Shown: in pieces, positions 40,448-58,747 of the stretch | Numbering within the stretch: the stretch's first letter is position 1 | How the letters are laid out: every line of letters starts with the position of its first letter | Assembly: GCA_024704765.1 (NCBI GenBank) | Contig: JAKMXF010000297.1 | Span: forward strand, 62,001 to 126,000 | Source of the DNA: Oopsacas minuta | Taxonomy: Eukaryota > Animalia > Porifera | Length of the DNA: 64,000 nt | Direction of reading: 5' to 3' | The notes under the pieces: model-generated | What the model saw: the letters and a program-made list of their open reading frames with translations, nothing else | Told to the model about the DNA's origin: nothing | Databases searched by the model: none | Position numbers and translations under genes: made by a program

Positions 40448-41476
40448 ATGCTGAGTGATCTGGAGGGTGAAAAAAAGAAATATACATTTTCATCAAAGAA
40501 AGCTCGCTCTATCGTTAAAGCCTATTTTGCATCTAAAATAATTGTGTATTATATTGTCCTCTTTGTGTACCTTCTCCTGGGGGGACTATTCTTCCATGTT
40601 CTAGAGGGTTCTGATGAACAGATACAGAGAGAAACTGCATTGGAGGAAATTGAACAGTTGAATTCTAATGTTAAAGTCTTTCTTAATTCGCTTAATATTT
40701 CAAATGAGACAGTTCCAATCAATAAACTAGAGTTATTAAGCTCATATATAGTCGAGTTAAGTGAGAATATCTCTGCTTTAAACTCTCAATACTCTCCTGT
40801 TATGAAATGGACATTTGGTCGTTCTATTTACTTCTCATTCATTGCCATTACAACTATCGGTTATGGAAAACTAGCCCCGAACACTCAACACGGTCAGATA
40901 TTTCTGTGTTTCTATGCACTTTTAGGTATCCCAATATTCCTATTGCTTGTTACTGAAACTTCTAAGAACTTTACTAATGCGTTTGATCTCTTAGTACTAA
41001 GCAGAGTTAAGAAAGAGAGATACAGATGGATTGCCATATTCTTAGCAATTGTATTTGGGTTAATAGCCATGATATTAATACCAGCTGCCATATATGGAGC
41101 TATAGAGAGCTGGCCTTATAGCACTTCACTGTATTTCTGTTTCGTATCTCTAACAACTATTGGGTTTGGAGATTTTGTTTTAGGAAGTAATCCTGATGCA
41201 CGATACAGTGATAACCGACACCTAGCAGATTTCTATGTTATTACTAGTATGCTATGGCTGTACTTAGGTCTCGTGTTTCTTGCTATTCTAATTAAGCAAG
41301 TTGGTATTGGGATAGTGAAACTAGACAAGCTTCTTAGTAGAATGATTGACAGAGTTATCTCTAAAAAGAAAGAAAAATTGAATGTAATTTTACAGAAAAT
41401 TCATGAAAAACATTCTCCAACAAAAGAACTTGAAGATCCAATAGAAGAACCCGAAGTGGCTACCAGCACTATGTAA
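40448..41476 (+). CDS. Two-pore-domain (K2P/KCNK) potassium channel
   Basis: Four TM helices with two pore loops, WTFGRSIYFSFIAITTIGYG and YFCFVSLTTIGFGD. Confidence 0.96.
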   Translation: MLSDLEGEKKKYTFSSKKARSIVKAYFASKIIVYYIVLFVYLLLGGLFFHVLEGSDEQIQRETALEEIEQLNSNVKVFLNSLNISNETVPINKLELLSSYIVELSENISALNSQYSPVMKWTFGRSIYFSFIAITTIGYGKLAPNTQHGQIFLCFYALLGIPIFLLLVTETSKNFTNAFDLLVLSRVKKERYRWIAIFLAIVFGLIAMILIPAAIYGAIESWPYSTSLYFCFVSLTTIGFGDFVLGSNPDARYSDNRHLADFYVITSMLWLYLGLVFLAILIKQVGIGIVKLDKLLSRMIDRVISKKKEKLNVILQKIHEKHSPTKELEDPIEEPEVATSTM

Positions 41477-42096
41477 AATATGAGTTTTAATATTAACGGT
41501 TTTAGGCTGCGAAAACCACCGAATCGTATTTATTTTTAATATTTGTAATCTACGTGCATTCTTAATGCATGTGTATATTTTAGCTAGGTAATTAATTCAA
41601 TATTGTTATTTTGTTGGGTGAATTTCTCATTTATGTAAATACAAACTGAAATATCTTTCCCTATACTACTACCATAGCATATGTGTAGACAAGAATTCCT
41701 CTTCCAGAATTGTTGTTATACTATGTGATAACGAAATTAATTGTACACCATGCTAGTTACACTCGATCATTAAATTTATATGCTAAGAATTCATACAATT
41801 CAGGCATTATTTCCTACGCGAGTATATGTCATAACATATGCCTCATCTAAAGATTAATATCGTGACTTATGAACTGTAATCTGTATTTAACATTTTAATA
41901 TTACTCTATGTAGCACAACTCGTGTGTGGTTGTGCAGTTTACCCGAGTCGGAAGTCTACAAACACTCCATGATGCCGTTAAATCATTAATAAATAATTAT
42001 ACAAATACGTTAATGTAGACATTAACTGAAGTAACTAATATATTTATATTCTAATTCAACTCTATTGACTGAAAAATATATTCTCAATACCTAACC

Positions 42097-43062
42097 ATGT
42101 CGAACGGAATTCATCGCCATACCTCCAATAAGCAATGCTCTTCTCCAAATAAAGTATCCTTAGAGGAGAAATCCAAGTCTCTGTATTCAAAAATGATCCC
42201 ATTTGATTTACAGCCAATCTGGCTTAAAGATAATGAATTCCTCCAAACTAACTATCGACCTATCAACAATTCATATTGGAAATGTATAAAAACTATGTTT
42301 CTGCTCCATACAGAAACATTCAACATATGGACACATTTACTTGGTTGTGTATTTGTGTGTTTATTGACTCTGTCTGCACTGTATATACACACATTCAAAC
42401 TGTCTGACGTTAAGATACAACTCAGCTCTCTGCCTACTATAGACAAGGCTATGTTCTCGTTATTTGCAATCAGTGCAGCGTCTTGCTTACTTGGCTCTAC
42501 AACTTTTCATATCTTCACTTGCCACTCGGAGTCCACAGCGAAATTTCTGAACAAAATCGATTATCTTGGAACAACCGTTTGCATAATCGGCTCTTCTCTC
42601 CCGTTGATATATTACGGATTCTTTTGTCATCCTTGGTTGATATTCATATATTGCACAGTATTTCTGGTAGGTGGGGGATTATGCTGTTACATATCTTTCT
42701 CTGACACATTTCGCAGACGTGACTACCGAAAAGTCCGCCCTACAATGTTCATCTTGTTAGGTTTAACTGGTATTATTCCCATATGTCATATAATATCCAT
42801 GAGAGGATTTACTGAGGTGTTTGATCGCTATGCTCTTCACTGGTTGTGTATGATGGCATTTTGCTATATATTCGGGGCATTCATCTACTCAATGAGAATA
42901 CCCGAGAGATTCTTCCCCGGTAAATTTGATATATTCGCCCACAGCCACCAAATATTCCACATGTTCGTAATCTTTGGTATTATTTCTCACTATGAATGCC
43001 TTACCAGCACAGTTTCATACTACTCTAATCATCAGTCGATATGTCAAGCTAATGTGTTCTGA
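42097..43062 (+). CDS. ADIPOR: Adiponectin receptor (PAQR family)
   Basis: WLKDNEFL, LHTETFNIWTHLLG, HIFTCHSE, KIDYLG, RIPERFFPGKFDIFAHSHQIFH; the Zn-binding histidines are present. Confidence 0.95.
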   Translation: MSNGIHRHTSNKQCSSPNKVSLEEKSKSLYSKMIPFDLQPIWLKDNEFLQTNYRPINNSYWKCIKTMFLLHTETFNIWTHLLGCVFVCLLTLSALYIHTFKLSDVKIQLSSLPTIDKAMFSLFAISAASCLLGSTTFHIFTCHSESTAKFLNKIDYLGTTVCIIGSSLPLIYYGFFCHPWLIFIYCTVFLVGGGLCCYISFSDTFRRRDYRKVRPTMFILLGLTGIIPICHIISMRGFTEVFDRYALHWLCMMAFCYIFGAFIYSMRIPERFFPGKFDIFAHSHQIFHMFVIFGIISHYECLTSTVSYYSNHQSICQANVF

Positions 43063-43796
43063 AGCACAGTCTAGCTCGCTTATATCGTCTACATTTTGTT
43101 GCAGTTTTATCGTGTATGTTTACTTTATTGAGATTATGTGCCTGTTCGTATTTATCGTTTTACTATGTATGGAGATTATGAAAATTATATATTATTATCT
43201 GTAATTACTTTTCACAAACGTAATTTTTACCCAAAAACATCGAATGAGTGCATCTGACATGTGGCCCCCATGGATTAATTTCGTGATGGACTTGCTTGTT
43301 TTAAGAATTCTTATTTCTACCTCTCTTTTTGTTTAACTATTCCCACCCATTGCCGCCAAGTTTTAGGAAACAAAGTCAGACCTGGTGGCGGGTCCACCAT
43401 GCGAAATTGCTACCAACTATGTAAATTTCACAAAAATACGGTCTCCAACAATAAACCTGGCGAGTCCACCGGTGCAGACTCCCCCAGGTACCCTAACTTG
43501 GTGCCTATGATCCCACCTTCATAGCTTGGCCTACTTGGGTACAGTTATCCACTTTTATCAGTGTTGTTTAATAATTATAACTTCAAGCTGCGTGATATTT
43601 ATAAGCGTTTCTTTTTGGACGCGTTCTTATTTTAGAAATTGGTTGGTCATATTCAATCTGAATCTTTACTTTATTATCCAACCATAAGAATCTATACACA
43701 ACTGAATAACCTTGGAAAATCTATGGAAGTGGTTGGTTTTTTAAACTATTATAAGTCAACCACTGTACCATTTGATATACACTCTAAATTATTGCT

Positions 43797-46700
43797 ATGT
43801 CCACTTCAGAAAATTGCTCACAACTTTCACAGACTCTTCCCAAGTCTAACGGAACTCAAACACAAGAAAAAATCTTATCGAAAGATGGCGAACTTATACA
43901 AAATGCTAATAATTTCGTAGATGACTTAGATAATGAAAATTCTCCTTTTGATAATGCATCCCAGAATGAAATGAGTGTTACTCAGCAATCTGACTTGCTA
44001 AATTCAAATTTTTCTTTCCAATCCTCCAGTCTTCCTAACAATAGTCTCACCTCTGTAGACATGACTCATGATGCCCACACCATTGATTTGCCCCCTTCCT
44101 CTCCTGATACTCTCTCACAGGACAGTCAGGAGAATGACAAAGATATTGAGGTTACTTCTAATATATTTATTTTCACTTGTAACCAATTTATATTTGAATT
44201 TATACCTTAGGAGTTTCTTGATACGTTCTATCCTGAACCCACTTCATCTCCCAATGTTCCAGATCATGACACAAACTCATTACACGAAATTTCTGATGTT
44301 GAAGATTCGTCAGATCAAGCAGACTCAACTGAGTTCGAAATGGACGAATCTAATTACCGTTATGGGTTGAATTCCTTTGAACAGCTCCCATTCGCTAAGT
44401 GAGTTTGTGAAAACTAGATATATTGTTTGTATTTATTTGGCATCAGATGAGTAATCATCTAATTTGAAATTCATAATTCTCCTTCAGTTACATGTTGACT
44501 GCCCACGATCAGCTTCGTCTCTGTCTGGACAAGAATCTCCAATATCAGGCTTGGATAAAACATCAGCTGCAACTAATCGAGTATGTAGAGATGAAGTTGA
44601 GAGAAGATCAGGAGAAGCTACAGACTCTAGCTAAGAACGCTACAAAGGGCACTCGTGCTCAAGCAAAGAATATGATTACTCTTAGGAAATTCTTTCCATA
44701 TTTCAGGTACTTCTAGCTTCATTTAATCTTGTTTTATACTCATTTCTGAGGACTATTTTACAAAATATGTAAATAGAGACCAGAATGGATTACCTCCTCC
44801 AGTCGATAAATCTGCTATAAAGAATGAAGCTCATCAGTACGGACTATATGATAAACCTGCTTCTAAATGGACAGATAAGGAGCGGCAGGATCTGGCTAAA
44901 GGAGTGCGTATGCAGAATTTAGAGGCTCTGTGTAGACCTATGCTATTGGAGCTTGAGAATGTGACAGAGCCTCGTGGTAGAGAGATAAAGCGAGAAATTG
45001 AAATGATAAAGAGAAAACCAGATAATGAGCTAGAGTTGAATTTAGATGGAATTGAGTGGGATAAGTTGGCTATTGACATGACACCTAACAGGTAATATAT
45101 GGAAATTGATTAGACGTTATAATCTATACATAATTATCAATATATCTACAGACATCCAGTAGAATGTAAGCTACAATGGATACAGATAGACCACCCCATG
45201 GTGTCTCGCAAAAGCTGGAATAAGCAAGAAGACAAGGCTCTATTGAAACTGGCTAAGGAGAACAAGGAGAGAGATTGGAATACTATTGCTATGAGACTAA
45301 AGTCTAATCGTACTCCTGTACAGTGTCTGCAGAGATACCAAACAGCTCTCAATACAGAGCATGTTAAGAGGGAGTGGTCAGGAGATGATGATGAAAAGTT
45401 GAGGGAGGCAGTGGCGAAATGTGGTGTTGGAAACTGGCAGGAAGTAAGTAGCACTTGTTCTTGCGTTAGTTATTGCGTACACGTAATTGGTTTCATATAC
45501 TGGATTTTTAGTTATGAGCCAACCTTAGTTTGTGATTAATTCGTTACTCAGTAAATAATGCTACAGCTTTTTTAGAGAAATCCTGATATCCAGTAAGTAT
45601 GTATCTATATGTGTATTTATTATAGGTTGCTAATTATATGGGAAACAGCCATACAGGAGCTCAGTGCCTGAATAGATGGGACAAAACTATAAAACCAACA
45701 TTTCGTAAGGGAAAATGGACTGAAGAGGAGGACGACCTTCTCAAGAGAGGAGTGGACATGTATGGGATAGGAAATTGGAAGAAGATTGCTTCTATAGTGA
45801 CTAGTAGGACAGATGTACAATGTAGAGAGAGATGGGTTAACATCTTAGATCCCACGATAGACCATGGTATGTTTTGTAAATTTGTTGATATTATATTTCA
45901 TATAAAATTTGCGATAATTTCCTTCATTTACATTGGATTCATAACAAACACGATTTTTCATATTTCTGTACGTATACCCGACTACAATATTATTTGATTT
46001 ATCAGATTAATATCTTTATGTGTAAAATATTTCACATACAACTGAGTATTTATTTCGGAACTCTCAGAAACATTATACGATACTTATTGTATGTGATTTC
46101 TTACGAAGCCATCTGTATAAGATATTTCAATTATAATATTCACCATTATGATAGTAGTAGTAGTAAATTGTAGTTCTGTTGTAATGAAATCTTCATTGGG
46201 TTCTGGATTCCATCCTCAATGTGTGTCATCACCTGTCACAAATGAAGGACAATTCCGTCTATTAATCCCACCAGATATCACTAATACTCCTAATACTTCT
46301 AGAGAAATATTATTAGACATTACAACTACTAATACTCCATCTGTTTTTGATGTGTCTAATTTGGATGCTAAGTTTTTGGAAGATTTTCTAAACTTCTCTC
46401 AAGAATTCAAAAGGGAGGTTTCTCATACGTCACAGATTCAAATATGTGGCTTCGGAAAACGATTATCTTTTTTAGCATCTCAGGATTTGATAAGTGATCT
46501 CCTGAAGCTATCCAACTGGTCTCTTCCTCCTACAGTCCTTGAGGCGTATAAGAATATAGGTATAGAGTGTATGTTCCGTTGGCAAGTGGAGTGCCTCATG
46601 AAACAGGACGTCCTTATCGGTCGTAATTTAATATACTCAGCTCCCACTAGCTCGGGTAAGACGCTAGTAGCTGAGATGTTAATCCTCAAGAGGATCCTTG

Positions 46701-49700
46701 AGGTTAAGAAGAAAGCTATCTATGTGCTACCATACATCAGTATTGTTAATGAGAAGGTTCATCATTTAAAGCAATTACTAAAAGGGTGTGGTCTCAGAGT
46801 TGGGGGGTTTATGGGTGGTTCTACCCCTAGAGGAGGATTTCCTGATATAGACATAGCTGTATGTACGATTGAGAAAGCGAATAGTTTAGTAAATCGACTC
46901 ATTGAGGAGAGAACTCTCAAGGAAGAAGTGTGTATTATAGTAGTAGATGAGATTCATATGGTTAGTGATCTACACAGAGGGTATCTGTTAGAACTACTGC
47001 TTACAAAGGTAAAGTACGTCACTCACTGTCCTGATTCATCACAACTACACAACCCTCTACAGATTGTAGGAATGAGTGCTACACTCCCCAATTTAGATAC
47101 TCTCTCAAAATGGCTATCAGCTGAGTTCTACTCAGCTGATTTCAGACCTGTTGAACTTAAAGAAATGATTCTATGTAATAATGTGCTGTATGATACAACC
47201 CTGACACCTATCCGGACGCTACCCACTCCTCCTGGTATTTCAGAGAATATCATTCATCTCTGTAGCGAGACTCTACTGGCTGGACATTCTCTACTAATCT
47301 TTTGTAGAACTAAGAAATGGTGCGAGACCATGTGTAATAATATTAGGAAATTCATAGAGAAAAATCCTAAACAATTCGGTATTGATTTGCCTGATAAGGC
47401 ACAGGCTAACAGTATATATCAAATGTTAATTGAGAGCTGTATACAGCCAGACCCCGTGTTAGTCCACTGCCTCCCCTATCGAGTTGGATTCCATCATGCC
47501 GGTCTCACCATTCAAGAGAGGGAAATCATAGAAGGTGCATTCAGTTCTGGAACTTTAAGAATCCTGACTGCTACGTCTACTCTTTCCTCAGGAGTTAATC
47601 TCCCAGCTAGGAGAGTTATTATTCGCTCTCTCACTCAGATAGGAAATAAGGTTATAGAACCTGTAACATACCGGCAAATGTGTGGTCGTGCCGGTAGAAC
47701 TGGACTAGATGACTACGGAGAATCAATCCTTGTATGTGGACCAGGAGAGATGGAGAAAGCACGTGCTCTACTAAACGCAACCTTAAAACCAGTCCAGAGC
47801 TGTCTGAACACTAACACAGACGTGTTTCAGCACTACGGAGTTAAACGAGCTCTTCTTGAGGTTATATCCTGCGGAATTGTACGGAGTAGATCAGAAGCTC
47901 AGGTTTATATCCGACACACCCTATTAGCCACTACCTTGGAGAGTACAATTCTTGAACGAATTGTAAATGAGTGTTTTAAGTTTCTCCTGGACTGTATATT
48001 TATCGAATACAAGCAGAGCTCCCATTCGTTAACAAAGAGTGATTTCGAAGAAGTTGCTCCCACTCAGCTAGGTTCAGCTACCCTTTCCTCATCTCTCTCC
48101 CCTGACGAGGCTCTCTTCGTTATTGACGAGATTAACAGAGCCAGACAGTGCTTCGTGCTTGAGAACGATCTCCACATGGTGTATCTAGTTACGCCAATCT
48201 GTCTTCGGGAACTTTGGTCAGAAGGAGAGCCTAAATGGAAAGAGTACATGAACATGATTGGGAAGTTAGAGAGAGACATGAAGAGTGTTGCTGATAAGGT
48301 TGGAATAAGTGATGGATATATTACAAGTTGTATTACACATGGAGCAAGGTTAGAGACTGATAAAGATAGAAAGTTACTAGCTATACATAGAAGATTCAGG
48401 GCTGCGCTAGCTTTGAATGAGTTAGTACGAGAAGTCCATCTTCATGATGTTGCTAAGAAGTTTGATCTACCTAAAGGTCAGCTGCAGAGTCTTCAAATAT
48501 CAGCTGGAACATTTGCAGGAATGGTAACTGTATTCTGTAGGAAATTAGGTTTTAAGAATATTGAACTTCTTATTTCACAATTACAAACCAGACTTGAATT
48601 TGGTATAGAACAAGAGCTAAATGAGTTGGTGAGGATATCTCTTCTCAATGGATACAGGGCCCGGGCTCTCTACACAGCTGGTTTTCATAATCTAGTCCTA
48701 ATAGCAGCAGCTGGAGTTGAGCTAATATCCAAAACTCTGAGAGATGCTCATCCATTCCATCGTAATGAACCTAGTGATAATCGCAAGAATTGGATATCAG
48801 CTCTCAGACAGGGACTGACTGTAAGAGAGATAGCAGCTGAGGTAGTTGAGGAAGCTAAACAGCTGTTAGAACAAAGCAGAGTGCTACCTGTTTGTCCAGA
48901 CTCACCTCCTGCTCCATCTCAACCTCTCAGCTCAGTAATTACTCCTGTTAACAAGCAGCTGATGTCTTCTAACTCTAACATACACTTTAGAAGGGTTACA
49001 GGTGATAACTTGCATAGATCTATTCGTAAACCTCTCTTCCTTTCTCCTACCGATACCGATACCGAGACCGAGACCGAGACCTCACCTCCTAAACGAATTA
49101 GACAAGATACTACTATGAACTCAGAGAATTTTCCTGAAGATCCTCTGTTACAAGTACGTAAGATTACTACTACAGATCCTGTAACATCTCTTAATGACTC
49201 ACAACACCAACATATCTCAAATCAAAATCAACGACCAATCTTATCAGAGATCAGCGATACTATTCCATTAGAATCTGGGTCTATTGAATTCAATCATATT
49301 AAGACAACAGATAATAGTTCACAGATAAACTCTATGAGCCAATTAGTCCCCAGTTCCTTCCAGGATGCTGATGGCTTTCTGAAAAGATTTGAATCCTCGC
49401 AAAATTCTGTGATGGATGTCAGTCCTCCTCCCTCTGAGCACCTGATCAAACCTCAGCCTGCGGAACCAATACCAGCTGATTCACCAAAATTACTTTCTCC
49501 CAGTCTGGAGGAGGATCGCGAGGAGTCTATTGATTTTGTTCTCACCTACTCTCCTACACAGAGCCCCTTCGCCTCTCCTAAATCCATCTCTTCCCCGAAT
49601 ATCCCAGCTAAGCCAGTCGTCTCTACTTCATCTCTCTCCTACAATGACTTCCTATATCATTCATTATTTGATAACACAACCCTATCCTTAGATAAAAAGA

Positions 49701-52700
49701 TTGGTATATCAAATGCTACACAGTATTCAGCTCCCCTCCTTACACCTGATGAGTGGATTTCTGATAAGAAACAAGAATCAAACAGAATTACTTTCTCACA
49801 AATACAAAAACCTATAGACTTAGATGTTGATACAATACTCAGAATAAATATAACTCCCAACAGTGATGAATTCCATAAACTAGAAGAGAAGTGTTCATCT
49901 TATCATTTTAGTTTTTCTTTATCAATCAAAAGTTCTAATCTCTTCTCCAGTAAGATAGCATCATCTCCAGTAGCTCCTGACCTTCTGCATGGTATAGCGT
50001 TATACTTCGGAGGTAATGAAGTATTCTATATAGATCAATCACCTCCCATTCCTCTCATTGAATCCGAATCTCTAGCTACTTCTCTCTCTATTCTATCTCT
50101 TCTTAAACCTCCTACCTGTCTTGTAGCTTGGGGGATAAAATCTAAATTACTTACTCTCCTGAAGTGTAATATAAGAATTAATGCATTACTAGCTGATCCA
50201 CAAGTTGCTATTTGGCTACTAAACCCTGAATCTGATATCCTCGCGTTCTCTAAACACTTCTCTGTAATCTGTTCCTATCCATACAGTTCTTCCTCTTGGT
50301 TAGATAGACTTGATTATGGTACACGGACACTAAATACTTGTAGTCAAGCTATATTATCACTGTTACTTATGCAAGAACTTGAGGTTAGGTTGAGACAGGA
50401 GAATATATACCAAGTATTTCTATACAATGAGATGCCAGCTGTTGCTAATTTCGCTATTCTAGAGGTTAACGGGATGTGTCTAGATTCATTTATTTTGGAG
50501 CAAAACTCGGTTCAAATTGAGAATGAATTAAAATTGCTTTCACAAAAGGCTCAGCGACTAGTCGGTGATAATTTTGATTTGTCTCGAGAATCAGAAGTAG
50601 CCAGGATTTTATTTACAAGTTTAAAACTTCCTATTCCCAGTTCTCATAAGCCAGTTAACAAGTCTTCTAGTCCTCGCAGGAACAAACATCCCAGCACTTC
50701 AAGAGACGTATTGCTTGAGCTGACAGACAAACATCCTGTAGTTAATGTCATAATGGCTCACAGGAGACAAAATTACTCTCTCAATAGATGTTTGTATCCC
50801 CTCAAAAAAGCTCTTATAAATAATAGAAACACAGGTATGTGTAGAGTATACCCTAAGAGTAATTACCATACTGTAACAGGGAGAGTTACTCTTGAAGATC
50901 CAGATCTACAACATACTCCAAAAGACTTTGACGTACCTGACTCTATTTCAAACAATAACGTATCTCTGAGTATGAGAAGCACATTCACTGCTAATCCAGG
51001 ATATGTTCTCATATCCGCAGACTTTTCACAGTTAGAACTCAGGATATTAACTCATTTATGCAGAGATCCAACTCTTGTAGCTATATTCTCATCTTCAGGA
51101 GATATCTTCAAGCTCATCGCCTCCAGTTTCTACAAGGTATTATCTTCTAAGGTATCTGACACACAGAGATTCAACGCTAAACAAATATGTTATGGTATTG
51201 TCTATGGAATGGGTTGTGTAACTTTAGCAAAGAAAATGAACATACCAGTTGATGAGGCTACCAAACTAATTTCAAGCTTCAAAGATCGTTTCAAAGAGAT
51301 TGATACTTTCATGGAAAAGCTTGTAAATAATTGTAAAGAGTTAGGCTATGTAGAATCTATATTGGGAAGAAAGAGATATATTAAAAACTTAAATAGTAAA
51401 TCCTCATATGATTCTGGTGAAGCTAGAAGGAGAGCAATTAATACCAAGATCCAATCCTCAGCTTCAGATCTCGTTAAACTCGGTCTTAACAATATTTTCA
51501 AAGAGTTACACAACCAGAATATCGGTACAACGTTATCCCGTGATGGTATTAAAAGGGGAGAAGTACTCTTCTGTAACTTTCTACATGATGAATTAATATT
51601 TGAGGTTTCAGAGCATCTAGTGCATAGAGCTGGAGACTTAATACAACGCTCATTAGCTAATGTTATAAAACTTGAACTTCCCCTTCCTGTAGTTGTCAAA
51701 TACGGAACATCTTGGGGGAAGTTAGTCCGTCTTGACTGACTGATTATTTTATAGTTGAATTGTTGAATTATACCCCTGGGGTAGCGCTATGCCATTATTC
51801 TATAATCTGTATAAATGTATGATGTATGTATATGAATCAATTATCAAATTCTAACTTGTCTGTATGTATTATTTGTAGGAGATTATCTAATTCAGATTGT
51901 TTAAATAGGCCTGAATTCAAATAATTTATTATGCATTGAATTTGCACTACAAAGATATCTTTGATTAATATGTGTTGTATTTGTTAGGTAAATGGACACG
52001 AGAGGAAGATGAGATTCTATTACGATTTGTTGCTAAGTTTGGTCCTGGTAAATGGTCTCAGCTAGCCTCAGTTATGGGTTCACGTACTGACAACATGGTG
52101 ATGAGACGATGGGAGAAACTCAACAAGCCCGGTGTGGTAGCTAAGTACAGACTTCTACGGCTAAAAGCTAAATTCGCTAGAGGAGCTGACAGCAAAGTTA
52201 AAGCTACTCTAGAGCCAGAAGATCTTGACATTAGTATTCTCCCTGAGAAAGCTAGAGAGAAGGTTAGAAGGATTAAGCGATCAGCTGGTAAAATACGAAG
52301 ACACAGCTCAAGGACTGCATATGATTGTCCATATGAGAAGGATAGACCTTACGCTAAACCGATACGCCCTACTAAGAAATATGCTACTCTAGGTCGCCCC
52401 AAAGGATCGAAATCTCGTCTCATATTCAGGGAGAGTGATACGGATGTACTAGGCTCTGACATTTCTATTCTTGAGGGAGAAGTAGTGCAATTTACAGATG
52501 GTATGTGAATACTATTTGAATTTCCGTTTAAGTTTTGTATTAATTTTACTAATATTACAGGTAAGGTACCTATTAAGAAATCAAAGCTACGTCGCAAGAG
52601 GAGGAATCCTGATGTAGACACAGACTCTAGTGACACTGGTGAGGACAGAGGCCGTACTAAACCTACAAAGAAGCGACATAGACGACAAGATGGAGAGGTC

Positions 52701-53699
52701 ATAGTAGATGGGAGTGACGCTGATATCTCCTGCTCTGATGATGACGCTCCTTACAAGCGGGGAGATGGAACTGGTCTAGGGGGACTTTCCTCCTTCCTCA
52801 GCTTCCTGCCGCTCAGAGGGGACACGATGGAGTTATTTGGACCCAACTTCCCTCGCTGGGACTACCAGACTCGACCTAATTTCCCAGTAATCCCACATAA
52901 ACCGAAAGGTAAGTTACTATTCTATACAACTATTTATAATCAAATAATTCAATGCATACCATCTTCATGTTTGGAATGTAGGCAAGCAGAGGGGTAGACC
53001 GCGTGAAACTTTCTGGGACAAGACATTCCCTTCATTCCAGGAGAGTCAAACAAATAAGAGATCTCTACCAATAGATGACCCTACTCTAGAAGCTGAGATA
53101 GCTCAATACATGTCCTCTCATGCTCCTAACCCCATAATTAGTCCTCATCCTCCTGTACCTGTACCTCTTCATCTACCTATACCATCTCTTCCCTATGTGC
53201 ACAGTAACACCTGCTCTCTCCCTTCCCTCCCTTCTTTACATACTCCTTCTACAACTGAGCCGCCCACTCCTACTACACCTGTACTCTCTAACTTGTCTAA
53301 ACTAACTCTACTCGCTAAACAAGCTCTAGAAACATACGAGAAGAAAGGTAACTTATCGTAAATACTATTTTATTGAATTTATTTACTCTATTCTTTCTAG
53401 ATAAACAGGATGTTGCTAAAGATAAGACTTGTGTAAAATCTCCCAATGAATCAGGATCTTTTCCTTTCTTGTCTCCCTCCAGAAAGGAGGATCTAGGACA
53501 TATATCAGAGCGTAATCTCACAGAGGGAGAGCTACAAACTCTACAGTCCGGAGACAACATTCCAGCCATGGCCTCTGTTATCGCGAGACGGAAATCTGTT
53601 CCTAAGACAAAAACTAGTCGCTTCAGGGCTAAGAAAGCTCTGAAGAGATCCAGTAAGAGGATATCAAAACAGAAAGCTAAGCGAGCTAAGATTTGTTAA
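43797..53699 (+). CDS. SNAPC4: snRNA-activating protein complex subunit 4 (SNAP190); 10 exons: 43797..44150, 44211..44398, 44488..44706, 44777..45091, 45152..45443, 45626..45866, 51988..52500, 52561..52908, 52982..53347, 53401..53699
   Basis: FFPYFRDQNGLPPP motif, then a half repeat and four Myb repeats (SWNKQED, EWSGDDD, KWTEEED, KWTREED). Junctions are GT-AG and phase-compatible, including the phase-1 intron 45867..51987. Confidence 0.88.
46148..51739 (+). CDS. POLQ: DNA polymerase theta (helicase plus family-A polymerase), intronless, nested in SNAPC4 intron 6; start may be ATG 46184
   Basis: SF2 motifs APTSSGKT, DEIH, MSAT, HHAGLT, QMCGRAGR; S/P-rich central linker; Pol A motifs ADFSQLELRIL, AKQICYGIVYGMG, LHDELIFE. 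Confidence 0.96.
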   Translation: MIVVVVNCSSVVMKSSLGSGFHPQCVSSPVTNEGQFRLLIPPDITNTPNTSREILLDITTTNTPSVFDVSNLDAKFLEDFLNFSQEFKREVSHTSQIQICGFGKRLSFLASQDLISDLLKLSNWSLPPTVLEAYKNIGIECMFRWQVECLMKQDVLIGRNLIYSAPTSSGKTLVAEMLILKRILEVKKKAIYVLPYISIVNEKVHHLKQLLKGCGLRVGGFMGGSTPRGGFPDIDIAVCTIEKANSLVNRLIEERTLKEEVCIIVVDEIHMVSDLHRGYLLELLLTKVKYVTHCPDSSQLHNPLQIVGMSATLPNLDTLSKWLSAEFYSADFRPVELKEMILCNNVLYDTTLTPIRTLPTPPGISENIIHLCSETLLAGHSLLIFCRTKKWCETMCNNIRKFIEKNPKQFGIDLPDKAQANSIYQMLIESCIQPDPVLVHCLPYRVGFHHAGLTIQEREIIEGAFSSGTLRILTATSTLSSGVNLPARRVIIRSLTQIGNKVIEPVTYRQMCGRAGRTGLDDYGESILVCGPGEMEKARALLNATLKPVQSCLNTNTDVFQHYGVKRALLEVISCGIVRSRSEAQVYIRHTLLATTLESTILERIVNECFKFLLDCIFIEYKQSSHSLTKSDFEEVAPTQLGSATLSSSLSPDEALFVIDEINRARQCFVLENDLHMVYLVTPICLRELWSEGEPKWKEYMNMIGKLERDMKSVADKVGISDGYITSCITHGARLETDKDRKLLAIHRRFRAALALNELVREVHLHDVAKKFDLPKGQLQSLQISAGTFAGMVTVFCRKLGFKNIELLISQLQTRLEFGIEQELNELVRISLLNGYRARALYTAGFHNLVLIAAAGVELISKTLRDAHPFHRNEPSDNRKNWISALRQGLTVREIAAEVVEEAKQLLEQSRVLPVCPDSPPAPSQPLSSVITPVNKQLMSSNSNIHFRRVTGDNLHRSIRKPLFLSPTDTDTETETETSPPKRIRQDTTMNSENFPEDPLLQVRKITTTDPVTSLNDSQHQHISNQNQRPILSEISDTIPLESGSIEFNHIKTTDNSSQINSMSQLVPSSFQDADGFLKRFESSQNSVMDVSPPPSEHLIKPQPAEPIPADSPKLLSPSLEEDREESIDFVLTYSPTQSPFASPKSISSPNIPAKPVVSTSSLSYNDFLYHSLFDNTTLSLDKKIGISNATQYSAPLLTPDEWISDKKQESNRITFSQIQKPIDLDVDTILRINITPNSDEFHKLEEKCSSYHFSFSLSIKSSNLFSSKIASSPVAPDLLHGIALYFGGNEVFYIDQSPPIPLIESESLATSLSILSLLKPPTCLVAWGIKSKLLTLLKCNIRINALLADPQVAIWLLNPESDILAFSKHFSVICSYPYSSSSWLDRLDYGTRTLNTCSQAILSLLLMQELEVRLRQENIYQVFLYNEMPAVANFAILEVNGMCLDSFILEQNSVQIENELKLLSQKAQRLVGDNFDLSRESEVARILFTSLKLPIPSSHKPVNKSSSPRRNKHPSTSRDVLLELTDKHPVVNVIMAHRRQNYSLNRCLYPLKKALINNRNTGMCRVYPKSNYHTVTGRVTLEDPDLQHTPKDFDVPDSISNNNVSLSMRSTFTANPGYVLISADFSQLELRILTHLCRDPTLVAIFSSSGDIFKLIASSFYKVLSSKVSDTQRFNAKQICYGIVYGMGCVTLAKKMNIPVDEATKLISSFKDRFKEIDTFMEKLVNNCKELGYVESILGRKRYIKNLNSKSSYDSGEARRRAINTKIQSSASDLVKLGLNNIFKELHNQNIGTTLSRDGIKRGEVLFCNFLHDELIFEVSEHLVHRAGDLIQRSLANVIKLELPLPVVVKYGTSWGKLVRLD

Positions 53700-54068
53700 T
53701 TAGTTTAATTACTGAATTTACTATAACTTCCTATCTTCACTTTCTAGCCTCAACTTACACTTTCCCCCATCTTAGATTGTCTTTCTACTACACATAGCCT
53801 GTTTGTGGTAGCAAGATTTCTATTTGAAATTAAGTCTTTACTTTTACAAGTGCATTTGATCATTCTTTAGTTTTCTATTACTTATTCCTTGTACGATATG
53901 TTCAATTGCTTTTCTCTATAATTTTCTACTTTCTTCTATTTCTATTCTGTATAGAAATATCTATGTTTATATTATTGCAATGAGAGTAATGGGGGAGGGT
54001 ATGAACATGTCAGTGATTCATATACTTTTACAATTTCCTCTTACATCAATTAGCTTTATATTTGTATT

Positions 54069-54311
54069 ATGGCTGAACCTAACTGTGCTGCCGCCCCTCT
54101 TCCTCCTCCCACTCTCCCCAACCCCCCACCCTCTCTACAAACTCCTAACACGAGGAAAGTCCACAGGTTGAATTACATGCAGAAGTTTATGAGTCCTACT
54201 GACGCTATTACTTCTCCTTGTTCTGATAAAGTTAAACATTTACAGGGAGTTAAAGTCGTTAAGCAATCTACCCTAGTAGAAGTGCCTGAAGCAAAGTCTC
54301 TACAGTTCTAA
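54069..54311 (+). CDS. Spo12-family-like microprotein, 80 aa
   Basis: FMSPTDAITSPCSDKV matches the Spo12/Bns1 signature F-x-SP(S/T)D-xxx-SPC(S/T)-x-K; proline-rich N-terminus. Confidence 0.65.
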   Translation: MAEPNCAAAPLPPPTLPNPPPSLQTPNTRKVHRLNYMQKFMSPTDAITSPCSDKVKHLQGVKVVKQSTLVEVPEAKSLQF

Positions 54312-54899
54312 CCGTTAGCAACCCTTTCTCTTCCTGAGCCCTGAGCTGAGCCGAGTTGATTTACTACTGTACTTATTGATTTCTTGTTTGTGTTTATTAT
54401 CTTTCCAATAGTTTGGTTATCTGATGGATTCACTCGGTAATTCTAAGAAAACTATCTTTCGGTTTACTTTGTGTTCTTTATCTTAATGATGCAATAAGGG
54501 TAGCCTGAGTAGAAAATTTGATGAAAATCACTTATACCGTATTTCCCTGAATAAACGCCTACCCAAACTAGTCAATACAAATATAATTAAATGCCAGGAT
54601 TCACGTAATTTCACTAGTAACCAATTGGGATAGTCAAACTCCTAAAGTTGTTATTCTTAAAAATCAAGAAATTTTTAGACCAAAAGTGACCACAAAATAA
54701 ATATAACTTTGAAGGGACTATATAGTATACATAAATGTACTCGTTATACGAAAAACTTGTCAATTCAACTGCTTTCTTATTAACGAGAATATATCGTAAG
54801 TAAATGGACAAAGAATACAATTAGAAAATCGTTATAGAAATGAAATATTTCAATCGCTAATTGATATATTATAAATTTAAGTTTAAATTTATTATTAAG

Positions 54900-55756
54900 A
54901 TGGTCTCTAAGAGGATTGGCAGAGCATTTAGCAAACGATCTCGTGCTAATACTAACGACAGTCTTCTCCCTCCTCCTCCCACCCTCTCCCCACTATCAGC
55001 TAGTTACGATTTCGAGAGAGAAGTACAACTTGTTCAGCATGTAGAACAAGCCAGTAGAAAGCTATACAAGGATATGAAGAGGAGTTCTGAATCTGGATTT
55101 CAACCGAATAGACAGCTCTCCCGCATAGCACAAGATCTTAACACAACAAGCTACAGGTCTCGTAGCCTGAAAGGTCTTTGTGTAGACTTCAATAATCATG
55201 CATCTCAGTTGCAGGAAATGGGTAGAGAGTTGAGGGCAGCTGAAGAAGCGATGTTTGTAGAGCCTATGAAGAAGTTCCATAGAGTATTTCCTAATGTTAA
55301 TGCTGCTATCAAGTTAGTATTTATTAATAGTACCCAATTGGCATACATTCCATGTGATTATTTGTTTGTAGGAAGCGAGAGAGGAAACTAGAAGATTATG
55401 AGAAAACACAAGCTAAGTTGGATCGTCTAGCTGACTCCAATCTTAGATTTGACGCGACTAGCAGAGCTGTACAAATATCACGGATGGAGTTTGAACAATA
55501 CGAACAGAAGATAGCCAGAGATATGCCTTGGCTGTATGAGGAGCGTCTAGAGTACTTAGAACCGTGTGTAGATGCTGTTATACAATCACAACTAGCTCAT
55601 TACTCGGAATCTGCTAGATTAACACAGAATCTTGTGGGTCATCTGGATAATCAGAGTTTACAACTACCTGACACAGAATACAGAGCTTTGATGGATAAGC
55701 AACTCGCGAATTTTCGCACTCTATCTATCGTCTCTCCTAGCGGTATACTTAATTAA
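54900..55756 (+). CDS. BIN3: Bridging integrator 3 (N-BAR domain); exons 54900..55312 and 55372..55756
   Basis: DFEREVQLVQHVEQASRKLYKDMKR, FVEPMKKFHRVFPNVNAAIKKRERKLEDY and DMPWLYEERLEYLEPCVDAVIQSQ. Phase-2 intron 55313..55371. Confidence 0.9.
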
Positions 55757-56119
55757 GAAATACATATGTTTATACGATTTTAATTCATATTATTTTATTT
55801 GTATATATTTTTATTCGCATTATACGTTCAAGTATTGCTGCATGGAATAAACGTGTAACAACACAAGAACATCTCACCTGCTTTATTGTGAAACCCATTA
55901 GTCTACATATCTTACTATTTTGATTTCTTTATTCAGTATATTTCACTTCTAAGAGTTTTTGCAAATGAACTTCATATACGTTATTGGTCTTGGAAGACAA
56001 ATGTTAATATTATAATGTATGTAGTTAGAGATTAGGCATTGTCTGTTTAAGCTTAATAAGAATATAGACTAGACATATCTTAGTTAGTTAATAGTTTGTT
56101 ATTTGTTAAGACAATTTAG

Positions 56120-58747
56120 ATGTCAGCTGATATAGAGAATGGGGTAGACGCGCCTCTCTCCAGTCACTCCCTGCAGCCTACAGATAAGATATACTCTAAG
56201 TGTGTTAAAGTGCCTGTCAACTTTAATGACAAGTTCCTGTGTCTGGTTAACGGGACTAGCTTGGGAGAGATGAAGTCAGATACTCAAGAGGCGGAGCGTC
56301 ATGTTAAGGAGAGAGGTCTGGAGGTTATACAGTCTCCAGATGGTACCAATTTACCAGATACTGTACCAGATAACTCAGAGATTGTGTTTGTTCTTGAAAA
56401 CTTTGAATCCACAGAATATCAAAATCTGTCCAAAACAGGACTACCCATAATCACACCTAATGTAGTCCGATCCTGTGTGTTACGTCAGGTGGATGTACCC
56501 TTCCCTATTCGCCCCATGCTGAGTGCACACATGTACGGACTGACTATTATATTCACTGGATTCAGAGAGCAGGCTCGATTAGACGACTTGGTTAAGAAGG
56601 TACATCTCATGGGAGGTGCAGTTCGGAAGGAAGTCGGAATGGGAGTGACGCACTTAGTAGCGTACTCAGTCCTCGGTACCAAGTACCAGCTGGCTTTATC
56701 ATTCGGGACATCGATGATGAGTGAGAAATGGGTACAGCAAGTATTCGAGAGGGTAGGAGACCCTAAGGCCAGTGCTCTAGACGAGGAGTTCTCTCGATAC
56801 ACCCTCTCTCCCTTCACCGGACTTACTCTATGGTTCTACGGATTCTCTGATGAAGACAGGCTAACCATGGAAAAGATGGCTGCAGAGAGTGGAGCTGTTA
56901 TTATCAATGAATCAGATGGATCTACTACAGGTATTGTTAAAGCTACACACTGTGTCATGGGGGAGGTTACACCAGAAGCTATCCTGAATGTGTCCTCTAA
57001 GATACGACTGGTTAACCAGGAATGGTTCTGGGAGAGTATCCGTATGGAGGCGTGTGCTGATGATGCTCTCTACTCACTCAGAGAAAACAAGAGACATTCT
57101 CGTAGCAAACCACGTGCTAAACATCGTAGACATTTCCGTAACAGTAACGTGTCTACTTCTCTCCACGAGGCCTCTGTACTCACCCTGAGTCCTGCCACAC
57201 CTCTTATCGACGCCTCTGCCGCTGATCTCGATCCCCGAGCTGAGCAAGACGCGTCCAGACGTCACATAGCTGTGGAACTCCTCCAGACAGAGGAAAACTT
57301 TGTCAATATTCTAGACGTGATAATAAACTCATTCAAACGACCTATTGACCAGACTGATCAGCGCGGGGGTCCTGTACTATCCGGTGAATACAGTAAGACT
57401 ATATTTGGTAATCTTGAGGATATCTATGAGACACATAAAAGGTTTAAACACAGTTTAGAGGAACGAATTGACTCATGGGATCCTAATTCGATGATAGGGC
57501 AGGTAGTGTTAGAACATGCTGAAGCCTTTTCTAAAGTATATCCTCCATTCACTAATTTCTACGAAACCGGTAAGAATATGCTAGAGAAGTGTCGACAACA
57601 GTTTCCGAGATTCCACGCTTTCCTGAAAGTAGTAGAAGCTAAACCTGAGTGTCTCCGTCAGTCACTAGTAGACCTATTGATACAGCCTGTACAGAGACTG
57701 CCTAGACTTATACTTCTATTACAAGAGCTATCCAAACACACTTCAGATGACCATCCAGATAGTAATATGCTAGTGCAAGCAATATCTAAGCTGAAGAGTG
57801 TTATGGAGTATATTAATGAAGATAAACGTAAGACACAGATACAAATGCAGATGTTTGAGATAGTTAGAGAAATACAGGATTGTCCACCAGACCTTCTGGC
57901 CTCACACAGACACTTTATTACTAAACTAGACTTTGTTGAGCCCCAGAGTCCAGCTGATACTGTATACACCTTCTTTCTGTTCAATGACTACTTTGAGATA
58001 GCTAAGAACAGAGCTGGCATGGGGAAGAAGGTAGCACATGGTAAGACACAGTATAAACATAACAAATACCTTCATCTTTCATTCGTACAAGTTGTAATTG
58101 ATGTTAAAGATATGCCAGATTACACAACACAGAACACATTTGCTATTCTCAATGGAGTATTAGGTACTGTAATGTTATTCCGTATAGTACAGTCAGAACA
58201 CACTAAAGAGGAATTTATCAAAATCCTATGCAAGACTATAGTAGAATCTCGGGGATTGAGTGATGCCTGTGAAGACCCTAACGAGCTATTGATGAGTTAC
58301 ACGTGGCAACAGCTACAGCCCTCAGTCGCTAACGAATCTCAAGCACGTGCTTTGATAGGTAACAGTCCATTCAAATTATCTCTCAAACGTGTGTTTGATA
58401 AAACAAAGAAAGTACATAGAGTGTTCTCACAAAAAATCGATAGATCCAAACAACAGAAACGAACTCGATCTAAATTTGGTCAGGGAATGTTGGATGGAAT
58501 ACCTGATCTAGCGGATGACGTATCAGAAAGTTCTATGGCAACACCACACAATCTGCAGCATAGTTTGTCCTCCAACTTCACTCCCGGTCCTATTGCGAAA
58601 CTCCATTTCTGTGAAGAACCAGATCCGAACGACTCCTTAATCTCACTTGTACCAACCCTAAACTATGGAGAGGTTCCTCCCTCATCCAAGCGTGTAGCTA
58701 CTAATGACGAGATTCTAGATCAACAAGGCAGAACCACAAGATTGTAA
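56120..58747 (+). CDS. ECT2: ECT2 RhoGEF (BRCT-BRCT-DH-PH)
   Basis: IIFTGFR...VHLMGGAVRK...VTHLVA (BRCT), QEWFWESIRMEACADDALY, ELLQTEENFVNIL, LLIQPVQRLPRLILLLQEL and INEDKRKT. Confidence 0.95.
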   Translation: MSADIENGVDAPLSSHSLQPTDKIYSKCVKVPVNFNDKFLCLVNGTSLGEMKSDTQEAERHVKERGLEVIQSPDGTNLPDTVPDNSEIVFVLENFESTEYQNLSKTGLPIITPNVVRSCVLRQVDVPFPIRPMLSAHMYGLTIIFTGFREQARLDDLVKKVHLMGGAVRKEVGMGVTHLVAYSVLGTKYQLALSFGTSMMSEKWVQQVFERVGDPKASALDEEFSRYTLSPFTGLTLWFYGFSDEDRLTMEKMAAESGAVIINESDGSTTGIVKATHCVMGEVTPEAILNVSSKIRLVNQEWFWESIRMEACADDALYSLRENKRHSRSKPRAKHRRHFRNSNVSTSLHEASVLTLSPATPLIDASAADLDPRAEQDASRRHIAVELLQTEENFVNILDVIINSFKRPIDQTDQRGGPVLSGEYSKTIFGNLEDIYETHKRFKHSLEERIDSWDPNSMIGQVVLEHAEAFSKVYPPFTNFYETGKNMLEKCRQQFPRFHAFLKVVEAKPECLRQSLVDLLIQPVQRLPRLILLLQELSKHTSDDHPDSNMLVQAISKLKSVMEYINEDKRKTQIQMQMFEIVREIQDCPPDLLASHRHFITKLDFVEPQSPADTVYTFFLFNDYFEIAKNRAGMGKKVAHGKTQYKHNKYLHLSFVQVVIDVKDMPDYTTQNTFAILNGVLGTVMLFRIVQSEHTKEEFIKILCKTIVESRGLSDACEDPNELLMSYTWQQLQPSVANESQARALIGNSPFKLSLKRVFDKTKKVHRVFSQKIDRSKQQKRTRSKFGQGMLDGIPDLADDVSESSMATPHNLQHSLSSNFTPGPIAKLHFCEEPDPNDSLISLVPTLNYGEVPPSSKRVATNDEILDQQGRTTRL

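Follow-up and report, generated by a model that had tools for sequence, protein, structure and literature searches.

A DNA polymerase theta gene nested on the same strand within an intron of SNAPC4 in the glass sponge Oopsacas minuta

On contig JAKMXF010000297.1 of Oopsacas minuta, intron 6 of SNAPC4 encloses the entire coding region of an intronless DNA polymerase theta gene (POLQ), on the strand of its host, and the host exons on either side are joined in RNA. We give a probability of about 0.85 to the reading that the two are a conserved same-strand nested pair in which POLQ is, as we infer, expressed as its own cistron. Nested genes and trans-splicing have already been published for glass sponges, and this pair is one more case. 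It lends itself to the study of how a same-strand gene that fills an intron is accommodated in transcription, splicing and 3'-end formation: the case is clean, conserved and well defined, with both genes in single copy, RNA support for the host splice and eight genomes to compare. Positions below are those of the window, the whole stretch of 64,000 nucleotides that was analysed.

The SNAPC4 host gene

SNAPC4 occupies positions 43797-53699 of the + strand in ten exons and encodes a product of 1044 amino acids. Exon 1 (43797-44150), as read from the sequence, begins with the start codon at 43797 and corresponds to residues 1-118 of P0001, a 2902 amino acid GenBank/UniRef protein derived from the same DNA and named "DNA polymerase theta-like [Oopsacas minuta]" (see below). 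Exon 2 (44211-44398) is preceded by a 60-nt GT..AG intron and agrees in frame with P0001, exon 3 (44488-44706) encodes an N-terminal helical region that is colinear with human SNAPC4, and exon 4 (44777-45091) contains the half repeat Rh. The Myb repeats that follow are Ra and the first half of Rb in exon 5 (45152-45443; Pfam Myb, 5e-18), the second half of Rb and Rc in exon 6 (45626-45866; 9.8e-22), and Rd, with sequence downstream of it, in exon 7 (51988-52500; 1.1e-14). Exons 8 (52561-52908), 9 (52982-53347) and 10 (53401-53699) complete the gene, with a TAA stop codon at 53697-53699.

These are the four and a half repeats (Rh, Ra, Rb, Rc and Rd) of a SNAP190-type Myb row. Residues 82-446 of human SNAPC4 are matched colinearly by the N-terminal part and the array, and residues 455-512 by exon 7. 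A phmmer search with residues 150-536 of P0001 matched PDB chains 7xur_A and 7zwc_c with E-values of 7e-45 and 6e-43, respectively, the alignment beginning at query residue 40. A search with the N-terminal part of SNAPC4, whose length window left out long animal SNAPC4s, returned distant 4R-Myb proteins alone. The Myb repeats in the exons flanking intron 6 and the colinearity with the human protein support the assignment of the host as a SNAPC4 orthologue, which was also that of the first-pass annotation. A genome search found SNAPC4 in single copy, and exon 7 has no second copy anywhere.

Eight of the SNAPC4 introns are 53-182 nt long, and intron 6 alone (45867-51987, GTATGT..TTGTTAG) reaches 6121 nt. 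It lies between repeats Rc and Rd, its borders reading ...GAC CAT G/GTATGT at 45866/45867 and TTGTTAG/GT AAA TGG at 51987/51988, so that the last base of exon 6 is the first position of a split phase 1 glycine codon (G+GT). The POLQ open reading frame fills 91.4% of this intron and leaves flanks of 248-317 nt around the gene, the 3' flank being 248 nt. The borders, phase and length first given for the intron, its filling to more than 90%, and the placing of POLQ inside it on the strand of SNAPC4 all agree with these coordinates.

The POLQ guest gene

The POLQ open reading frame extends without introns from 46148 to 51739 on the + strand (5592 nt; 1863 codons and a TGA stop at 51737-51739). The whole frame had been taken as the coding sequence; its extent stands, and the start that is common to all relatives lies 12 codons inside it, at the ATG at 46184 (MKSS...), which gives a protein of 1851 amino acids. 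The POLQ-type helicase half has the Pfam domains DEAD (1.9e-24), Helicase_C (1e-11), HTH_61 (9.5e-19) and POLQ_helical (7.7e-50), a Walker A motif APTSSGKT and the box DEIH. In the same uninterrupted frame the C-terminal DNA_pol_A domain (5.9e-90, residues 1450-1857) follows, with polymerase motifs A (DFSQLELR), B (RFNAKQICYGIVYG) and C (HDE). Five domains and all motifs in one frame confirm, at the level of sequence, the earlier view of the guest as a complete, intact and intronless DNA polymerase theta gene.

The search for a further copy that had been recommended found none, and POLQ is single copy in the O. minuta genome; the other family A and helicase matches are a POLG-like gene (C44), a multi-exon polymerase of 28% identity (C347) and a HELQ-like helicase (C133). 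An intron-bearing POLQ parent, as a retrogene would have, is likewise absent elsewhere in the O. minuta genome. The first 400 POLQ residues, searched for glass sponge transcript-derived fragments, found nothing nearer than 56% identity.

Splicing of SNAPC4 across POLQ

The RNA evidence consists of Logan contigs of one run (X4) from one sample, which drop rare variants and indicate no transcript start, end, strand or level. One X4 contig departs from the genome at 45869 and goes on as AATGGACACGAGAGGAAGATGAGATT, the sequence of exon 7 from position 51991 onwards; the letters GTA at the 45866/51988 joint match either side, and the joint is read from 26 loose letters. The same run also splices the neighbouring intron (45443 to 45626). 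In DNA runs X2 and X3, which contain Nextera adapters, consistent with the O. minuta genome paper, neither the exon 6-exon 7 joint nor any other splice joint is found, so the junction named in the first-pass annotation as the first check of the nesting is present in RNA and absent from DNA. SNAPC4 is one gene of ten exons, and its mRNA is made by removal of the 6.1-kb intron between Rc and Rd. Since repeat Rd and the C-terminal half of the protein can be joined to the rest only by splicing, the Myb array does need splicing across POLQ, as had been supposed, and because SNAPC4 is spliced across intron 6, RNA polymerase II must transcribe all of POLQ and its 3'-end signals before it reaches the acceptor at 51988.

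The two findings that had been named as fatal to the nesting, a misassembly or SNAPC4 halves transcribed as independent 5' and 3' units, are hardly credible, and nothing in their favour was found. Contigs of DNA runs X2 and X3 traverse the donor-side boundary, X3 record 16 traverses the acceptor-side boundary, judged by its length, and the same gene order is present in seven independent assemblies; synteny and the RNA junction together refute both.

The public annotation reads the locus differently. P0001 agrees with the present model in SNAPC4 exons 1-6 and 7-10 and makes POLQ an internal exon of one 2902 amino acid SNAPC4-POLQ-SNAPC4 fusion, with splices from 45866 to 46155 and from 51732 to 51988, for which an AG within the second POLQ codon serves as acceptor and a GT located 8 nt 5' of the POLQ stop as donor. 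Besides that model itself, the fusion has in its favour an open frame through the 36 nt that precede the conserved POLQ ATG, but this is so in O. minuta alone: in each of the seven relatives an in-frame stop lies 1-2 codons 5' of its own POLQ ATG, and each retains the POLQ stop (after ...LDV). Moreover, exon 6 is joined straight to exon 7 in RNA, no second loose end is listed at the exon 6 donor among the X4 contigs, and 1860 residues put between Rc and Rd would disrupt the Myb array. The O. minuta annotation also lists almost no nested genes, 83 against the 2432 of Aphrocallistes vastus, a difference that is attributed to annotation method by Francis et al. 2023 (PMC10282587). We regard a true fusion as very improbable; the RNA joint and the conserved ATG, stop and upstream stops make P0001 a chimera and an annotation artefact. 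The locus is a concrete example of nested genes that the public O. minuta annotation has merged into a fused protein; for an early-branching animal lineage, models of this kind distort gene counts, orthology tables and surveys of domain architecture.

Conservation of the nested arrangement

The synteny comparison that had been suggested covers seven related assemblies (L009-L012 and L014-L016), eight genomes with O. minuta, and all seven relatives have the same nesting, donor (G/GT), acceptor (AG/G) and phase, on contigs that range from 26 kb to 1.5 Mb and share one gene order. Their POLQ proteins are 55-76% identical to that of O. minuta and represent four POLQ lineages. The host exons are more uniform, at 96-99% identity for SNAPC4 exon 6 in the three relatives, and 98-99% for the first 100 amino acids of exon 7 in the four relatives, that gave a separate alignment match. 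In a further genome, L013, POLQ is not nested, and the Rc/Rd intron of SNAPC4 is absent in the two cnidarians checked.

The statement in the first-pass annotation that a glass sponge genome abundant in nested genes had been reported is borne out by the A. vastus study, in which glassin is nested in both species (PMC10282587). The present pair shares with those cases a single-exon guest, a multi-exon host intron, a compact hexactinellid genome and a layout common to more than one species; it differs in that, in the portions of that paper drawn on here, POLQ in SNAPC4 is not described and same- and opposite-strand guests are not separated.

Nested genes are classically known from flies and mammals, an example being OMG, EVI2A and EVI2B within an intron of NF1, and textbook guests of the NF1 type lie on the opposite strand, in very long introns of which they take up little. 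POLQ resembles them as a complete gene in a host intron across which the host is spliced, and is unlike them in being on the same strand and filling 91% of the intron, with flanks of a few hundred nucleotides.

Expression of POLQ

The 5' flank contains a conserved block, TTCTTACGAAGCCA followed by the TATA-like hexamer TATAAG (46116-46121), that extends over 46098-46121 on the + strand, 86 nt 5' of the conserved POLQ ATG, and is a candidate promoter or processing element. It is present in 8/8 genomes, L015 having a single mismatch, at a distance of 70-113 nt to the POLQ ATG, and none of 200 shuffles reached the conservation observed. Across the genome it is not enriched (80 matches versus 86 for the reversed control), and it is missing 5' of the non-nested POLQ of L013. 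A reading of the block as a trans-splice branch point (CTTAC) was rejected on account of the 70-113 nt between it and the ATG-proximal AG, and also of a second block, in which O. minuta and L010 retain TATTC/C and lack the AG. Rfam found nothing meaningful in either flank of intron 6 (best E-value, 0.6). Judged by its sequence, the POLQ-specific block with its hexamer would suit an intron-internal promoter no less well than release from the host transcript.

We lean towards such a promoter, in which transcription of POLQ would be directed by the conserved TTCTTACNNAGCCA block together with TATAAG, the latter some 30 nt 5' of 46145. A start near 46145 would make 46184 the first usable POLQ ATG, and the transcript may next gain a spliced leader at 46174, just after TTGTAG, and may be polyadenylated within the 248-nt 3' flank.

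The first-pass annotation had preferred a general mechanism in which guest mRNAs are released from host pre-mRNA. Applied here, POLQ would have no promoter, and its mRNA would be cut from SNAPC4 pre-mRNA by leader trans-splicing just 5' of the ATG and would be cleaved and polyadenylated in the 3' flank, with every transcript giving one mRNA or the other. TTGTAG (46168-46173, + strand), 10 nt before the conserved ATG, is a candidate 3' splice acceptor for a leader, an AG abuts the POLQ ATG in three relatives and is 2 nt off in a fourth, and publications on glass sponges describe trans-splicing of a leader (PMC10282587 and PMC7986045); in L009, L010 and L014, however, 15-26 nt separate the ATG from its nearest AG, and in PMC10282587 the leader is on only 4% of A. 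vastus long reads. One X4 RNA contig is unbroken from exon 6 through the 5' flank into POLQ (45840-49203), and another, judged by its length, extends from POLQ to exon 7 (50433-52016). Some of the RNA is thus unspliced or read-through, and in these contigs host precursor and POLQ-specific transcripts are inseparable; the continuity of the first is what any unspliced SNAPC4 pre-mRNA would give. Depth is about 1100-1360 over exon 6 and 145-347 over the POLQ contigs, contig depth being no ranking of expression. Position 46923, within POLQ, may be an allelic site or one of RNA editing. The X4 contigs, from which rare variants are dropped, contain neither a spliced-leader junction nor a contig break at 46174. 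The upstream block fits a promoter of its own at least equally well, and we consider release from host pre-mRNA the less likely account. Its fuller form is slightly less likely again: the POLQ mRNA would come from the SNAPC4 primary transcript, with a leader at 46174 and cleavage before 51988, as a binary choice kept since the deepest split of the eight genomes. If true, each SNAPC4 transcript would yield either an snRNA transcription factor or a repair polymerase, an "intronic operon".

Leader trans-splicing and operons of nematodes and tunicates resemble the locus in their tightly packed same-strand genes, in a downstream cistron that could mature from a longer precursor and in a splice acceptor near the start codon. 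They differ in that here the downstream cistron sits in an intron, with the exons on either side joined by splicing, and that no leader junction is seen at the POLQ locus in the X4 contigs. Operons have not been demonstrated in sponges (PMC7986045).

Returning to the intron-internal promoter, the 3' flank in which its transcript may end has no canonical AATAAA or ATTAAA; these are equally absent after the non-nested neighbour genes, so their absence after POLQ is uninformative. Conservation of this flank in a six-way comparison is no higher than in shuffles. We note that a palindrome, CCCCTGGGG, lies at 51773-51781 (+ strand), 34 nt 3' of the POLQ stop, and that CCCCTRGGG is found 34-65 nt 3' of that stop in five of the six genomes examined.

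SNAPC4 and POLQ gene models

The Oopsacas minuta SNAPC4 gene, read from the forward-strand sequence against a database model, has ten exons (43797-44150, 44211-44398, 44488-44706, 44777-45091, 45152-45443, 45626-45866, 51988-52500, 52561-52908, 52982-53347 and 53401-53699) that encode 1044 amino acids; its eight introns besides intron 6 are 53-182 nt long. Exon 6 ends with GAC CAT G/GTATGT at 45866 and exon 7 begins with TTGTTAG/GT AAA TGG at 51988, a phase 1 junction that restores a typical Myb linker (...LDPTIDH-G-KWTREED). The exons were searched separately, as genomic stretches or as sub-ranges of the public protein model P0001; the N-terminal part of the protein aligns colinearly with residues 82-446 of human SNAPC4 from solved SNAPc structures (E 6e-43 to 7e-45), and exon 7 aligns with human residues 455-512, which are repeat Rd.

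The sole long open reading frame found by an ORF scan of the interval is that of POLQ, DNA polymerase theta (46148-51739, + strand, 1863 amino acids), which occupies 91.4% of the 6121 nt of intron 6. It has Pfam matches to DEAD, Helicase_C, HTH_61, POLQ_helical and DNA_pol_A, and the Walker A, DEIH and polymerase A, B and C motifs are all intact. The first-pass annotation had placed an intronless POLQ on the same strand in this intron, between Myb repeats and filling over 90% of it; its coordinates and matching phase 1 hold, and with RNA and comparative support (below) the nesting is correct. The first twelve codons of the O. minuta frame are not conserved among seven relatives, in all of which the POLQ N terminus is MKSS or MKTS, corresponding to the ATG at 46184.

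The whole O. minuta assembly (61,460,524 bases, 365 contigs) was searched for the further POLQ copy that the annotation had suggested looking for, and neither such a parent copy nor a second copy of SNAPC4 exon 7 was found; the idea that POLQ is a retrogene is therefore unsupported. Apart from POLQ, the family A and helicase matches in this assembly fall on a POLG-like gene, on a HELQ-like helicase that lacks a polymerase, and on a multi-exon family A polymerase gene (G000:C347:20026-23773) that is neither POLG nor POLQ and shares only 28% identity with POLQ across the palm region.

RNA from the locus and the public fused model

Contigs of sequencing runs X2, X3 and X4 were compared with window positions 45380-51379. 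X2 and X3 are DNA, since they have Nextera adapters, flat depth and no joints, and X4 is RNA, since it has TruSeq adapters and a GT..AG joint, 45443 to 45626, that removes SNAPC4 intron 5; these assignments agree with the library types given in the O. minuta genome paper. One X4 contig leaves the genome at 45869 and goes on as AATGGACACGAGAGGAAGATGAGATT, which is exon 7 from 51991, as both the intron and exon 7 begin with GTA; the contig carries the 45866/51988 junction. A second X4 contig is continuous from 45840 to 49203, and a third, 1584 long, begins at 50433 and if colinear ends at 52016, coincident with the end of the 26 junction letters; to judge from the lengths, spliced and unspliced paths may merge there in the k=31 graph. 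The X4 contigs thus represent both spliced SNAPC4 mRNA and RNA that is continuous across both intron borders.

At 46923, within POLQ, X4 has G where the assembly and the DNA runs X2 and X3 (recorded as the same sample) have A; the change, GAA to GGA (Glu to Gly), may reflect A-to-I editing or an allele carried by a different individual. A run labelled as another organism, X5, contains DNA 95-99% identical to window positions 45576-51235, with SNAPC4 exon 6 and the intron's first 95 nt included, and probably derives from a close relative or from a different population.

The best database match of POLQ is P0001, a 2902 amino acid protein named "DNA polymerase theta-like [Oopsacas minuta]", in which SNAPC4 exons 1-6 (...TIDH/VVVVNCSS...), the whole of POLQ (...GKLVR/KWTREED...) and SNAPC4 exons 7-10 follow one another through an AG within POLQ codon 2 and a GT located 8 nt short of the POLQ stop. 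This fusion is contradicted by RNA that joins exon 6 straight to exon 7 and by the comparative data, and the model is wrong. PMC10282587 gives 83 annotated nested genes in O. minuta versus 2432 in A. vastus and states that low numbers in some genomes probably reflect annotation method; the O. minuta genome paper is silent on both nested genes and trans-splicing. Both have already been described for glass sponges, and the POLQ/SNAPC4 pair is a new and well-documented case.

Conservation of the nested arrangement

The POLQ proteins of seven related ENA assemblies are 1814-1864 amino acids long and 55-76% identical to that of O. minuta; the eight genomes together represent four lineages. The synteny comparison proposed in the first-pass annotation supports the nesting, as in 7/7 relatives the orthologous SNAPC4 exons flank a same-strand POLQ, with donor ...GAY CAY G/GT, acceptor ...AG/GR AAG TGG and unchanged phase. 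In all seven, a stop lies in frame one or two codons ahead of the POLQ ATG and another follows ...LDV, which indicates that POLQ has been maintained as a cistron of its own. Where host Myb exons align as separate matches they show 96-99% identity, and the gene order K2P channel, PAQR (HlyIII), SNAPC4 containing POLQ, BAR-domain gene and ECT2 is kept. The order of window positions 40448-58747 is found on one strand in relatives L009-L016, within the reach of each locus. An eighth intronless POLQ (L013), 47% identical, does not adjoin SNAPC4.

The guest-bearing introns are 5988-6334 nt long, apart from that of L011, which has gained an additional antisense ORF and measures 10,268 nt. This second guest (L011:2699-4462, - strand, 588 amino acids) has no Pfam family match; the O. 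minuta genome contains 77 matches to its family, many of them interrupted by stops, so the family looks mobile or expanding.

The intron before VA.YM (O. minuta exon 5/6 boundary) is common to Nematostella and Hydra SNAPC4. Neither cnidarian gene has an intron at the Rc/Rd linker, the nearest being 11-12 codons upstream (CRER/Y) and about 20 codons downstream, so the guest-bearing position is not common to them. The Hydra vulgaris SNAPC4 orthologue (L020) spans 99 kb and has intronic ORFs of 609 (-) and 787 (+) amino acids.

Expression of the guest gene

From host donor to conserved ATG the POLQ 5' flank is 283-394 nt (4549 nt in L011) and is unalignable between lineages save for one block, TTCTTACNNAGCCA, which in 8/8 genomes is situated 70-113 nt upstream of the ATG, with one mismatch in L015. 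None of 200 shuffle sets reached this conservation, and the motif is not enriched across the O. minuta genome and so is locus-specific. It is followed by TATAAG in O. minuta, L012 and L015; a transcription start about 30 nt past TATAAG would be near 46145, which would explain the non-conserved ATG at 46148. Published work documents leader trans-splicing in glass sponges (PMC10282587; PMC7986045), and a candidate acceptor, TTGTAG (46168-46173), ends 10 nt before the conserved O. minuta ATG; TAG abuts the POLQ ATG in three relatives and an AG is 2 nt away in a fourth. The annotation had envisaged a general mechanism releasing guest mRNAs from host pre-mRNA. Such a mechanism is not shown here. 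The X4 contigs, which drop rare variants, have no leader junction or break at 46174. We tentatively favour a promoter of POLQ's own, possibly with a leader added afterwards, over release from the SNAPC4 pre-mRNA.

No canonical poly(A) hexamer occurs in the POLQ 3' flank, and likewise the non-nested neighbours have none. The six-way conservation of this flank is not above that of shuffles. A palindrome, CCCCTRGGG (51773-51781), lies 34-65 nt past the POLQ stop in 5/6 genomes, and TTAAATAGG (51900-51909) is found 77-153 nt upstream of the host acceptor in four. The PAQR and SNAPC4 start codons have no abutting splice-acceptor-like AG; such an AG abuts those of ECT2 (TTTAG/ATG, 56120) and the BAR-like gene (TTAAG/ATG, 54900).
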